A stretch of 64,000 bases of DNA from the sequence record NC_042060.1. The stretch is one strand, 5' to 3'. Of this stretch, positions 52,413 through 57,024 are shown one piece after another; the first letter of the stretch is position 1; every line of letters begins with the position of its first letter. Both the position numbers and the translations under genes were made by a program. The notes under the pieces are model-generated. The model had not been told where the DNA came from and did not search any database. It saw only the letters and a program-made list of their open reading frames with translations.

Positions 52413-54446
52413 CTATCGCAGTTTACCACCTTTAACTAGTAAGTCATATGGATGGTCATTCCTCATCTTGTTAAGGAAACTGCCTGGGTTATTTAGTGGC
52501 TCATGCTGCTTTTCGAAAGCCATCGCACCACCTAAACTACGACATTGCATTAGCCTATTATATTTTTCAAATTGGCCATTAATACCGGGTTTAGGTAAGC
52601 GATAGTCTCGATATTGAGCTGAACGGATCATCATAGCGTATATCAAGATCTCACAATGGGAAATATTAAGGCTAATCTTTTCATTAGCCATTGTTGCAAA
52701 TACAGGTAGTGCTTCAATTGGTGACTTGTAGTTTTTAAGATACGTTTTAGACGTATATCCAACTTTCTCAGTGCTTAGTTTACCTGCCTCGGCTGAGTCA
52801 CTACCGGAATGTAAGAAACTTTGGAATCGTTTCATTACTTCATACATGTTTACGTGCTTATTTGGTAGCGTTAAGAATGGTAGGTTAAAATCAAAACCAC
52901 GAAGACTAATGACGATATTGTCTCGCTGATCTAGTTCCCAACGGACCATCTTAATATGCTTTAGCATTTCAATAGATAGACTAGCCCTACGGTTATACAG
53001 CGACACAGTCAGAACATCACCACATTCACCATTCACCTCATCATCATAGACTAGGGCCAGGCTGGTTAGTTCAGTAGCTGAAGTAGCTGGATATGCAGTA
53101 AGGTCATCAATCATTAAAATGTCAGCAAGGTTTTCTGCCTCTGACCGTGCGATTACTAAACGATAATCCTTCTGAGTAAGTTCTTTCTTTAGATATAGTG
53201 TCTCTGGGATTTCACCTGTTCTTAAATAATTACTTTCAATTTTGCCAAGTTTATATTGTTCTACAGCAGAAGACGCATCGGTGTGTTTAGTAGACAATAC
53301 TGCTGAAGTAATTTTGTCACCCATCGATACGGCAGCAACCTGACCGATATTAGTTCCTTTTGGAATATTGATACCTAGTCGGCCATAACAAGTCATACAG
53401 ATACCCTGACTATCTGGATGATTACATCCAAATACAGACCTGAATTTCTGTTTAGTTCCAATTAGGTGTGTTTCATTTCCACGGATCCAGTCTAGTTTAC
53501 CATCTTCTTTTTGATAATATTTTCCTTTGAATGCTTTTAAAGTTAACTTAGTTACAGGATACTCAGCTAAGATTGTGGTCTTACAATCACCAGGATGTAG
53601 CCTTTGGACATATTGTGCAATAAGCTGAGATTTCCGGTTAAAGTATTCAGTTACTCGCAGTAGTTCTTTGTTATATAGTAGTGCTTTAGTACCTGAACGA
53701 GATTCAATCATATTCTCATACAGATTCCAAATACCATCAATATAACCAGTTGTTACCGGATATTTAAAGATATCTGAGTTAATGTCAGTTGGAAAGCCCC
53801 GCCAAGCAAATGCTTGTAGAAGCTGTTCAGTTTTCTGAGTACCAGAACGAAGACCTTCAATGATGCTGTTACCAATGAATTGGGTAGGATCATTAAATAC
53901 TTCTTTGACTTTACCATAACTAATTTTTTCGATACCATAAGTAGTTGGTTCGATATTATGGTTAGCCTCACGTACCTTGGGATGATTATATACTTCAGCA
54001 ATATCAAACATCGACAAGGTTGCTAGATATTCAGACAGTTTCACAGTGGTCTGATTATACAGCCAGTTCTTACCTTCAATAGCCAGTTTAGATAGTACTT
54101 CAGGATCTACTGTTTCACCTGACCAATCATAGATGTTCCAAATAGCCTTATTTAAATGCTTAACCATGGCCTTAGATGTTACTCGGCCACCTTCAACATT
54201 TAGATAATCTTTAGGGTTATCAGTTAAGATGCGATTGAAATCGATATGGTGATCAGATGGAATTGGGCAATCTTTATAATGTTTAAGAGGATACCAACAC
54301 AGAACGGATAATTTGGTAATACGGTCAACTGACACAACCGTTTTACCATCATCAAATTCGATTAGATGCCATTCTGAAGGGAGTGACCATAAATCATCAT
54401 AACTTAGATTTAGAAGATCACGCGCTTTATAACGATTAAGATTCAT
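52413..54446 (-). CDS. gp74: Non-virion RNA polymerase beta' C-terminal subunit
   Basis: 677 aa; ESRSGTKAL, TEYFNRK, CNHPDSQGICMTCYG, LSTKH, AFEKQ. Confidence 0.93.
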   Translation of the reverse strand: MNLNRYKARDLLNLSYDDLWSLPSEWHLIEFDDGKTVVSVDRITKLSVLCWYPLKHYKDCPIPSDHHIDFNRILTDNPKDYLNVEGGRVTSKAMVKHLNKAIWNIYDWSGETVDPEVLSKLAIEGKNWLYNQTTVKLSEYLATLSMFDIAEVYNHPKVREANHNIEPTTYGIEKISYGKVKEVFNDPTQFIGNSIIEGLRSGTQKTEQLLQAFAWRGFPTDINSDIFKYPVTTGYIDGIWNLYENMIESRSGTKALLYNKELLRVTEYFNRKSQLIAQYVQRLHPGDCKTTILAEYPVTKLTLKAFKGKYYQKEDGKLDWIRGNETHLIGTKQKFRSVFGCNHPDSQGICMTCYGRLGINIPKGTNIGQVAAVSMGDKITSAVLSTKHTDASSAVEQYKLGKIESNYLRTGEIPETLYLKKELTQKDYRLVIARSEAENLADILMIDDLTAYPATSATELTSLALVYDDEVNGECGDVLTVSLYNRRASLSIEMLKHIKMVRWELDQRDNIVISLRGFDFNLPFLTLPNKHVNMYEVMKRFQSFLHSGSDSAEAGKLSTEKVGYTSKTYLKNYKSPIEALPVFATMANEKISLNISHCEILIYAMMIRSAQYRDYRLPKPGINGQFEKYNRLMQCRSLGGAMAFEKQHEPLNNPGSFLNKMRNDHPYDLLVKGGKLR

Positions 54447-54469
54447 TATTTACCTCTTGTATTATTAAA

Positions 54470-54490
54470 CCCCTGATCAATGATCAGGGG
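54470..54490 (-). promoter_or_regulatory. Hairpin overlapping the gp73 stop
   Basis: cccctgatca/tgatcagggg perfect inverted repeat. Confidence 0.5.
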
Positions 54491-55400
54491 CATATTCTAA
54501 TGCAATACCACTACATTCAAGCAGGTGATCAAACATAGCTACTGGGCGAGATCCACCAAATGGAATCTTTTCACGATCAACTGCAACTGGTACAGATGAA
54601 GGTTTTTCTGCTGTTAGCCAAGACTCAATAACCGCAGCATGCGCCAATGGGTTATTAGTTTGGTCTAAGATTTCAGCAGTCGGACCTGGACCAACTGTAC
54701 AGTTATATGACCGAGTTTCAGATTCACCGAATGACCGGATAGCTGTTTCTCGACCAGGTGTGCTAGCCCTATCAGCATTGTTTAACTTAGAAGGTAGACC
54801 AAATGGTTGTGTTTTTACAGATGCTGCTGCTGACCAGTCTTCACCAATCTTTTCTAGTAGCATCATGTAAAGTGGACCCATTAAGACATTATCTTTAGTT
54901 GTTACCCACTTACCAGCTTGATCTCGATAAGATACCTTCCCATAGTGTGGTCGATACTTATCGCTATTAATTAATTTGTTGACTGCTGCCATTAGATCCA
55001 CTGGATCATCAACTGGTGCGTAGATATATGGGAATCCATCCATTAGTACTGTTTTAACATGTTCTGCTGGATTTGGGTGTTCCATCATTTTACTATGCAT
55101 TGTTGGAGCAATGATCTCATAGAAACCTAATAGTTCTTTAAATGCATAATCAACCCATTGCGTATTACCCATTACACTATTTAGTTGTTGCTGGGTTGGT
55201 TTGGCATGTCGATCTAGTCCAGCTTCAACGCGTAGGCGTTGAGCTAGATCTCGTGCAGCTGCGCCAAAACCATGTTCATAAATTCGACCATAATTTGAAC
55301 GACGCATGGTTGAACCACCAAAGATAATTAGATCTGCCCTATTACCATTTTCGTCAATAGGCATATCTTCATCTTCCATTACCTTACAGATGACGCCCTT
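54477..55400 (-). CDS. gp71-73: nvRNAP beta C-terminal subunit, exon 2 (gp73 part)
   Basis: Begins KGVICKVMEDEDMP...RADLII; RSFGESETR motif. Confidence 0.92.
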   Translation of the reverse strand, partial: KGVICKVMEDEDMPIDENGNRADLIIFGGSTMRRSNYGRIYEHGFGAAARDLAQRLRVEAGLDRHAKPTQQQLNSVMGNTQWVDYAFKELLGFYEIIAPTMHSKMMEHPNPAEHVKTVLMDGFPYIYAPVDDPVDLMAAVNKLINSDKYRPHYGKVSYRDQAGKWVTTKDNVLMGPLYMMLLEKIGEDWSAAASVKTQPFGLPSKLNNADRASTPGRETAIRSFGESETRSYNCTVGPGPTAEILDQTNNPLAHAAVIESWLTAEKPSSVPVAVDREKIPFGGSRPVAMFDHLLECSGIALEYAPDH

Positions 55401-55707
55401 CGTTATGTTCAGGTAAGTTCGCTACGCTTACCCCGCCTCTCGTATTGCAGGCAGCTGCATGTCACCATGCAGACCAGACTATATCTTAACCTTCACCCTA
55501 GGTGGTCAGGTCCCTCCCATTTCCACTCGCTTGAGTGTACTCCGCGTAACCGGATAGTCGTTGAACGTTCAATCCATTTCTGGAAAGCTTCGCTGCTGAT
55601 TGTCTCATTGAGATGTCCCAGCAATTAGAGAGGATTTACTTGACTCTTTCGAGATCAAGCAGGCAATTTGACAATATCCATTCCTGAGAGATGGATGGAT
55701 ATTAATT
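55401..55707 (-). mobile_element. Group I intron (IA-type, with P7.1/P7.2), 307 nt, no homing endonuclease ORF
   Basis: P, Q, R, S elements (AAUUGCUGGGA, AAUCAGCAG, UCAACGACUA, AAGAUAUAGUC); P1 with a U.G pair at the 5' splice site; terminal G; splicing restores FHGG/KGVIC. Confidence 0.93.
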
Positions 55708-56886
55708 ACCACCATGAAAATCAGTCATCTTGAAAGCACCAGCAGGCATCTTTTGGGCTTTGTAAGTTACTTCGACTCGCCATTCATCTAGTGGGTCTAG
55801 TCGATAGAATCGAGATAGTTTACGGACATTATCAGGTTGAGGTAGGAACATCTGTGCAGTTACAATAAGACGTTCAAATTCCTCAGTGATATGTAGATCA
55901 TCTTTACGACGTGCTAATAGACCACGATAGATCTTTAATAGTTCTCGATAATAACTGCTAAGATGAGTATGATATTTAACTAGTTGTGCATCCATTCCTG
56001 TTGGAGTAGGGGATGGATTTACACGCTCATCACGCCAAATATCAATATCAATAACCTTCGCACCAGGTGTGCCAATAACAGCTCTATCGAAAGTTCTATC
56101 TAGTGTACGAAGTGCCCTAGGAGTCATCTCGGCAGGAGCTAGATCATCATCATGGTCACGGATGGCGAAGATTACACCATCTGGTCGGATAACATCGCCA
56201 ATGTCTGGGAATGGTTTATAGACCTTATCATCGCCATACATGTTTAAGAAGAAAGCTTTCCTACCAGCATTAGCTACAGCCGTGCTATAACTAGTTGGCA
56301 TCATCCTTTTAAGGAAATTCTTATTAGCTACGAATCCATCTTCAATGGTACCAGCGGCAGATAGGAATACAACATTAGCATTAACACCCATCCCTAAAGT
56401 ACCGTCTTTCTTAACTGCACCAGACTGTGCAATCACTGTGTCTTTAGAGAACATTTCATTTGGGGCAATGGTTTCCCACACTTCTCGATTCTTTACAAGT
56501 TCATAACCAAAGTCTTGGTGATGACTCATGTACTCGGGAACATGTAAGACACCAATGGTTTTATATTTGTCAAAATAGTTTTCGTAGATAATAGTTGTTA
56601 CCGGGTTAGATCTAATACTGTCTTTACCAATACCCGTTGGATATTTTCTAAGAACATGTAGTACACGACAATCCTCAGGAAAACGAACATCATGTGTATA
56701 CTTGGCATACTCTAATTCAGCACCCGTTAGGAAATAACGCGATTCATTTCCATTTACTTCTGGTGCCTGGCCAATATGTGTTACAAACATAGCACCCCGT
56801 GCAGATGAGGTAGTGCCATACCAAGGATCTAAACCAGTATGCCCTAATAGGGTTAGATCAATTTCACGTTTACCTAGTTCAGCCAT
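55708..56886 (-). CDS. gp71-73: nvRNAP beta C-terminal subunit, exon 1 (gp71 part)
   Basis: Starts MAELGKRE; SSARGAM, TIEDGFVAN, ends KMTDFHGG; spliced product 393+307 = 700 aa. Confidence 0.92.
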
Positions 56887-56998
56887 TTTGTTTATCACCA
56901 TTAATTAGACAAGATGCAGTACTACTATATTTCTTATTTGCGCTGTTTTTAGATATAGCCTTTTGTAAGACTTCAATGTCTGGTATCACCAATCTCAT
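56879..56998 (-). CDS. Small upstream ORF (36-39 aa) overlapping the nvRNAP beta start
   Basis: AGGAGG SD followed by ATG-AGA-TTG-GTG in frame; TGA overlaps ATGGCTGA of gp71. Confidence 0.45.
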   Translation of the reverse strand: MRLVIPDIEVLQKAISKNSANKKYSSTASCLINGDKQNG

Positions 56999-57024
56999 AC
57001 CTCCTGTTTACTAATTACAAATCA

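Follow-up and report, generated by a model that had tools for sequence, protein, structure and literature searches.

The interrupted polymerase gene

The window, which is the whole 64,000-nt stretch of DNA that was analysed, contained a homolog of phiKZ gp71/gp73, the C-terminal half of the non-virion RNA polymerase (nvRNAP) beta-like subunit, interrupted by a 307-nt group I intron (Table 1). In phiKZ, gp71-73 was assigned to this half of the subunit (PMC4666361). Over the 2.6 kb that were compared, the window was 100% identical to PA7 (genus Phikzvirus; 266,743 bp), to KTN4, and to many other phiKZ-like isolates.

The two exons were searched separately, never as a joined protein. Exon 1 corresponded to residues 1-393 (E 1e-271) and exon 2 to residues 394-700 (E 1e-211) of PDB 7OGP chain C. 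The two matches abutted exactly at 393/394 of this 700-residue chain, without gap or overlap, and the 393 and 307 codons gave 700 residues. On the minus strand, the 5' exon ran as ...TTT CAT GGT GGT to position 55708, and the 3' exon continued as AAG GGC GTC from position 55400. An HGNKG-type segment was restored across the junction, with HGG at the end of exon 1 and K at the start of exon 2. The first 57 residues of exon 2 were aligned with residues 1073-1129 of the E. coli beta subunit, in which the first lysine corresponded to K1073. Therefore, the intron was located inside the HGNKG active-site segment (beta residues 1070-1074). These results bore out the original prediction for this DNA, in which the intron split the catalytic region of nvRNAP beta and splicing restored HGGKG and a 700-residue subunit.

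The intron began with AATTAA, which placed an in-frame stop two codons in, and an in-frame ATG was located in exon 2, 21 nt past the splice site. GenBank records annotated two separate CDSs and no intron. As a result of this annotation, PA7, KTN4, and dozens of phiKZ-like records list an essential polymerase subunit as two unrelated CDSs, and they omit both the intron and the seven codons holding the active-site lysine. The phiKZ genome paper already predicted an intron at this site (Mesyanzhinov et al. 2002, cited in PMC10914365), and the spliced product is in the PDB.

The next gene (window 52413-54446, minus strand) encoded a 677-codon homolog of phiKZ gp74 and carried the RefSeq label 'RNA polymerase beta subunit'. 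The nvRNAP literature places gp74 in the beta'-like subunit (PMC4666361).

Architecture of the intron

The sole Rfam match in the 64-kb window was the intron, which matched RF00028 at 55455-55683 on the minus strand with 84.2 bits (cut-off 50, E 6e-20). The alignment covered the full model (positions 1-253 of 253). The positions of the exons and the ribozyme elements are listed in Table 1.

Table 1. Exons, intron, and ribozyme elements of the interrupted nvRNAP beta gene (window coordinates)
Feature	Position	Strand	Description or basis
Exon 1, gp71 homolog	55708..56886	-	393 codons from annotated ATG, ends ...FHGG
Exon 2, gp73 homolog	54477..55400	-	307 codons + stop, starts KGVICKV
Group I (IA-type) intron without ORF, 307 nt	55401..55707	-	RF00028; boundaries from sequence, exon matches, and RNA contigs
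P1 5' strand, exon GGU + intron AAUU	55704..55710	-	Read from sequence, pairing checked
Internal guide sequence AAUUGCC (P1 3' strand)	55662..55668	-	Read from sequence, pairing checked
P1-extension hairpin, 9-bp stem AAUAUCCAU/AUGGAUAUU, 13-nt loop	55673..55703	-	Alignment with phiKZ and FBPa36, RNA contigs, fold
P2 hairpin, GAAA loop	55639..55659	-	Pairing check and fold
P3 5' strand CCUCUC	55628..55633	-	Pairing check across related introns
P4-P5-P6 domain; P5 of 4 bp with 3-nt loop; P6a loop GAAA	55567..55623	-	Rfam, pairing, fold
P7 5' strand GACUA	55555..55559	-	Rfam and pairing
P7.1 and P7.2 hairpins, subgroup IA signature, between P7 and P3'	55524..55554	-	Rfam insert, pairing, fold
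P3 3' strand GGGAGG	55513..55518	-	Pairing
P8 hairpin	55488..55512	-	Pairing and fold
P7 3' strand UAGUC	55477..55481	-	Rfam and pairing
P9 hairpin, GUGA (GNRA) loop	55455..55472	-	Rfam, pairing, fold
P9.1 and P9.2 peripheral hairpins	55412..55452	-	MFE fold
Terminal (omega) G	55401	-	Sequence; intron contig of run X11 ends here

The P1 helix was composed of 7 bp, in which the last exon base, U (55708), was positioned opposite G to form a U.G wobble at the 5' splice site. The unconstrained MFE fold recovered all nested helices, with a free energy of -97.1 kcal/mol (z = -2.97; 0 of 100 shuffles were as good). The P7.1 and P7.2 hairpins formed a 33-nt insert relative to the Rfam consensus and folded as UCCG/CGGA and CACUC/GAGUG, respectively. 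Their location between P7 and P3' assigned the intron to subgroup IA.

The helices were supported by covariation among seven related introns, in which P3, P4, P7, P7.2, P8, and P9 stayed paired through differing sequences. All six positions of P3 were paired in each of the seven introns, which held five sequence versions of the helix, and the outer 4 bp of P8 were paired in all seven, each with its own sequence version. The P1 extension, P2, P9.1, and P9.2 were unaligned in the MAFFT alignment of distant introns, and covariation was read elsewhere.

The original prediction had described a complete, ORF-less ribozyme core of group IA, with P1, P2 and P9 with GNRA loops, P3, P7, P7.1, P7.2, P8, and a terminal G. 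Each of these elements was found in the sequence or the fold, the Rfam alignment agreed with a complete core, the P7.1/P7.2 insert agreed with group IA, and no ORF of at least 60 codons was found inside the 307-nt intron. Two short ORFs in the intron (53 aa on the plus strand, and 43 aa on the minus strand with a TTG start) span the ribozyme core and were taken as chance. The term 'minimal', also part of that prediction, holds only in a relative sense: with 307 nt and a P5 of just 4 bp the intron is compact, although smaller group I introns are known.

Splicing in phiKZ infections

Logan contigs from four RNA-seq runs, from four studies of phiKZ infection, were compared with the window at 54400-57000. 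In runs X2 and X10, which came from different studies, contigs joined 55398 to 55706 and skipped 307 nt. The joint had a 2-nt ambiguity that included 55400/55708, the junction predicted from the sequence and the one present in 7OGP chain C. One joined contig was 2,201 nt long, with 754 and 1,181 bases on either side of the joint. The joined contigs contained the exon letters of the intron-containing allele and not the recoded letters of KEN49, an intron-less phage described below; therefore, they represented spliced RNA rather than intron-less DNA. Furthermore, an intron contig in run X11 ended exactly at 55401, the terminal G. Two of the four runs gave unspliced contigs only.

The phage in these runs was of the HNH-bearing phiKZ type. 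Its unspliced contigs contained 916 extra letters between 55681 and 55687, and its exon 1 differed from that of the window at 37 of 1,181 positions. When phiKZ was aligned with the window, P1, the guide sequence, the first 21 nt of the intron, and the 3' 270 nt from the guide sequence on were identical, so the intron of the ORF-less strain would be expected to splice in the same manner. The native phiKZ nvRNAP contains a single gp71-73 polypeptide of 74 kDa (PMC4666361). In a long-read phiKZ transcriptome, evidence for splicing at gp72 was not found (PMC10914365). The joined contigs argue otherwise, against the published doubt on in vivo splicing of the phiKZ gp72 intron.

Probable loss of the HNH gene

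In reference phiKZ, the intron at this site is 1,218 nt long and carries the HNH gene gp72. In phiKZ, a 13-bp stem (AAUAUCCAUCCAU/AUGGAUGGAUAUU) surrounds a Shine-Dalgarno sequence and a 316-codon ORF. The gp72 ORF gave weak Pfam matches to NUMOD4 and HNH_3, at or near the cut-offs, and its final codons traverse the guide sequence and P2. When the window was aligned with phiKZ and FBPa36, ~911 nt were seen to be missing from its P1-extension hairpin, within the loop. The stem of this hairpin retained 9 bp and had lost one GGAT repeat, whereas the 13-nt loop kept AGGA, a remnant of the ribosome-binding site of the ORF. The deletion joint was located in the hairpin loop near 55681-55687. No clear microhomology was found at this joint, and the direction of the event therefore rests on parsimony and on the Shine-Dalgarno remnant. 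Since the HNH ORF is deleted, the intron can no longer mobilise itself.

The presence of the HNH gene gp72 at this position in phiKZ and its absence here had been stated in the original prediction, and both were confirmed by this sequence comparison. The alignment with the phiKZ intron, which had been proposed as a means to place the HNH deletion, located the ~911 nt in the loop of the P1 extension. The extra hairpin in the P1 loop had been considered a possible scar. The deletion joint indeed lies in its loop, but the stem already exists in phiKZ: what is left here is the base of the ORF stem, shortened from 13 bp to 9 bp.

Engineered orf72 deletions of phiKZ are viable (PMC12676376). The KTN4 paper reports that HNH genes differ between KTN4 and phiKZ, and the intron was not analysed there (PMC4908380). 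The ORF-less allele is unannotated, and a description of it as an intron was not found in the searchable literature. Variants of this kind are known: a working ribozyme that lacks its mobility gene represents a textbook step in the homing cycle.

Distribution of the alleles within the genus

The ORF-less intron was present in ~38 phage records, whereas the gp72 ORF was present in only five (phiKZ twice, OMKO1, fMGyn-Pae01, and FBPa36). One record, KEN49 (PP456877.1), was intron-less and contained an uninterrupted gene of 705 codons. One flank haplotype was shared by 37 of the ORF-less records, which differed from all HNH-bearing records at three silent sites 37-49 nt upstream. These sites were rejected as an endonuclease-linked signature, because intron-less KEN49 has the flank of the HNH-bearing phages. 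They are best explained by shared ancestry within the ORF-less lineage.

KEN49 differed from its nearest relative, OMKO1, at 20 of 2,103 exon positions. Four silent changes were clustered within 14 nt, at -4, -1, +6, and +9 of the insertion site (2540-2570 in locus L027; window 55392-55711), where KEN49 reads GGA GGG AAG GGA GTT in place of GGT GGT AAG GGC GTC. When 29 differences (the number against FBPa36) were placed in a simulation, ~0.7% of trials (~0.007) produced a cluster of this kind somewhere in the gene, and none of 20,000 produced one at this site. The recoding removes the GGU needed by P1. Judged from the pattern of substitutions, the KEN49 cluster may reflect either escape from homing-endonuclease cleavage or the boundary of a co-conversion tract.

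When seven Phikzvirus genomes were compared, two intron haplotypes were found, which differed at five intron sites and at +3 and +6 of exon 2. Haplotype A was composed of phiKZ, OMKO1, the window, KTN4, and SL2, and haplotype B of FBPa36 and T2P. Members with and without the ORF were present in both haplotypes, and the joints of the ORF-less members were 6 nt apart. ORF-less T2P keeps the Shine-Dalgarno sequence and ATG of the ORF, directly joined to the 3' flank of the ORF at a GATG repeat. In view of the presence of both states in both haplotypes, the two different joints, and the T2P remnant, two independent ORF deletions would be the economical reading.

Between the guide sequence and the 3' end, the aligned portion of the intron, every polymorphism among the seven genomes was located in a loop or conserved the pairing. 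P2 contained a compensatory change from C55-G64 to U-A in phage T2P, P8 contained changes from G.U to G-C and from A-U to G.U, and P9.2 contained a change from G-C to G.U. The P9 loop was changed from GUGA to GCGA in haplotype B. This pattern indicates that the ribozyme is under purifying selection.

The HNH genes of phiKZ (gp72, L003:1487-2434) and FBPa36 (L001:1826-2773) were intact 316-codon alleles that were 80.7% identical in DNA (80.6% in the comparison of phage records). Their dS was ~0.97 and their dN/dS was 0.11, whereas the surrounding intron core and exons were only ~2% different. The HNH alleles are thus far more diverged than the intron, and the history of the ORF would be much deeper or separate.

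Comparison with known introns and distant relatives

The intron of the window and the phiKZ gp72 intron share the GGT|AAG site, P1, the guide sequence, both splice sites, and the same 700-residue spliced protein, and the P3-P9 core was 100% identical over 185 nt. The differences were the ~911 nt with the NUMOD4/HNH ORF, absent here, and the stem length.

The T4 introns of the IA2 type (td, nrdB, and sunY) resemble the intron of the window in the P7.1/P7.2 insert, in P9.1 and P9.2, and in being inserted at a conserved position in an essential nucleic-acid enzyme. An IA2-like affiliation is suggested by one feature: intron positions 222-305, in the 3' part, are ~80% identical to the td intron of T4. 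However, the host gene is different, P5 is much reduced here, and the T4 introns carry the ORF in P6 or P9, whereas the ORF of the present element, where present, is located in the P1-loop extension and runs through P2.

The HNH intron of PhiPA3 gp210 is also a group I intron, located at a catalytic motif of an RNA polymerase beta-type gene in a nucleus-forming Pseudomonas jumbo phage (PMC11620839). In contrast, that gene encodes a subunit of the virion polymerase, the site is different, and the intron has an active endonuclease, which is absent here. The PhiPA3 intron endonuclease was shown to harm phiKZ and acts as a weapon between phages (Birkholz et al. 2024, PMC11620839).

A wider comparison was made with 17 more distant relatives from IMG/VR, with 30-71% protein identity. 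Nine of the 17 were intron-less and eight contained a group I intron (RF00028, 73-82 bits). The insertion site was HGG|KG in five of the eight introns and one codon upstream, HG|GKG, in the other three. Five were ORF-less (304-450 nt), and three carried an ORF of 265-311 codons (1,316-1,378 nt). At the site of the window, IMGVR_UViG_2706795739_000001 (309,208 bp; 70% protein identity) contained a 450-nt ORF-less intron (L013:3551-4000, 79 bits). The introns at HG|GKG (L015, L021, and L024) and at HGG|KG (L013, L016, L017, and L022) were homologous, inserted 3 nt apart, and each followed GGU. The intron-less relative L020 was a near-twin of L021 and L024. The same hotspot is used across distant nucleus-forming phages.

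According to Goddard and Burt in 1999, mobile introns reportedly pass through a homing cycle of invasion, fixation, ORF decay, and intron loss. HNH-bearing, ORF-less, and intron-less alleles at one site in Phikzvirus, and the same three in the distant relatives, resemble this cycle. The ORF of the window differs in that it was lost by a clean deletion and not by slow decay.

Origin and persistence of the ORF-less intron

The element is very likely a working IA-type group I intron in the nvRNAP beta gene, namely the gp72 intron minus its HNH ORF. Following standard group I chemistry, P1 would form in the folded pre-mRNA when the guide sequence AAUUGCC pairs with the GGU at the exon end and the four intron bases that follow it. 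An external guanosine would attack after the U of the U.G wobble, and the freed exon end would then attack after the terminal G. GGT and AAG would be joined in this way, giving ...FHGG-KGVICKV... within a 700-residue subunit. Without splicing, translation would stop two codons into the intron, and KGVICKV with the active-site lysine would be lost. The HNH ORF would have been removed by the ~911-nt deletion within the loop of the P1-extension hairpin.

The most likely reason for the persistence of the intron is that any inexact excision at the active-site codon pair would leave no working polymerase. An occupied site, which is no homing substrate, may add to this persistence. The commonness of the ORF-less lineage is most simply explained by descent, since 37 records share one flank haplotype.

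The original prediction had suggested that an intron lacking an endonuclease may still protect by interrupting the target site, a reasonable idea in view of the PhiPA3 gp210 work (PMC11620839) and of the recoded KEN49 site. This reading, in which the ORF-less intron was positively selected as a 'vaccine' whose split recognition site gives immunity to the gp72-type endonucleases of relatives, is possible but rather unlikely. The genus still contains intact HNH alleles, which are under purifying selection, and the clustered silent changes of KEN49 resemble a cleavage escape or a co-conversion boundary, as this explanation would have it. On the other hand, some phage HNH intron nickases, such as I-HmuI, also cut intron-containing DNA, so occupancy need not protect, and the abundance of the ORF-less allele may be simple descent. 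The use of an intron endonuclease as a weapon between PhiPA3 and phiKZ is a precedent, although in nucleus-forming phages the enzyme may not reach the DNA of a rival (PMC11620839). It is likewise doubtful that the ORF-less allele dominates the phiKZ-like phages because occupied sites, or recoded ones as in KEN49, escape the minority gp72-type nickases. If this were true, intron occupancy of jumbo-phage RNA polymerase would have been shaped by phage-against-phage warfare.

The opposite order of events, with an ORF-less intron as the ancestral state and an HNH gene that entered the P1-loop hairpin later in the lineages of phiKZ, OMKO1, and FBPa36, appears improbable. Free-standing endonuclease genes colonise intron loops, which was counted for this order, as were the far greater commonness of the ORF-less form (~38 compared with 5 records) and the divergence of the HNH alleles relative to the intron, as if they were separate arrivals. 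However, the ribosome-binding site and start codon of the ORF with the GATG joint in T2P, and the AGGA remnant and the stem minus one GGAT repeat in the window, count against it, and since both haplotypes have members with and without the ORF, two diverged ORFs would have needed the identical loop position twice.

It is hardly credible that the intron is a dead, non-splicing relic and that each of the two annotated CDSs yields its own polypeptide of the subunit, as the GenBank records, the in-frame ATG of exon 2, and the long-read study without spliced phiKZ reads (PMC10914365) might suggest, because separate CDSs would drop KGVICKV with the K1073-aligned lysine, the core is identical to that of phiKZ, for which spliced RNA and one fused protein have been observed, and the variation within the intron conserves its structure.

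With the ORF-less allele regarded as a gp72 intron that lost its HNH gene, one codon pair in one genus contains the HNH-bearing, the ORF-less, and the intron-less recoded states of a mobile intron. These phages provide a natural strain set for the question raised by the work on PhiPA3 and phiKZ, namely whether intron occupancy protects against the homing endonuclease of a rival.

A second group I intron in the same genome

Elsewhere in this genome, no ortholog of gp72 was found; the one paralog, with 35% identity, lay next to a second intron. This group I intron was located outside the window (C1:256751-257055, minus strand; locus L006:1501-1805; RF00028, 74.8 bits), and it appears to split the gp55-like nvRNAP beta' gene. 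Downstream of the core of the second intron was an HNH-like ORF of 345 codons (C1:255543-256580, minus strand), part of which was 35% identical to gp72. This genome therefore harbours two such introns, one with an endonuclease gene and one that is ORF-less. In all four RNA-seq runs, there were also contigs that matched the window only at 55471-55491 and 55612-55632 (21 nt each), with 210 other letters between these two core segments. These contigs evidently represented a paralogous phiKZ intron transcribed in the same infections.
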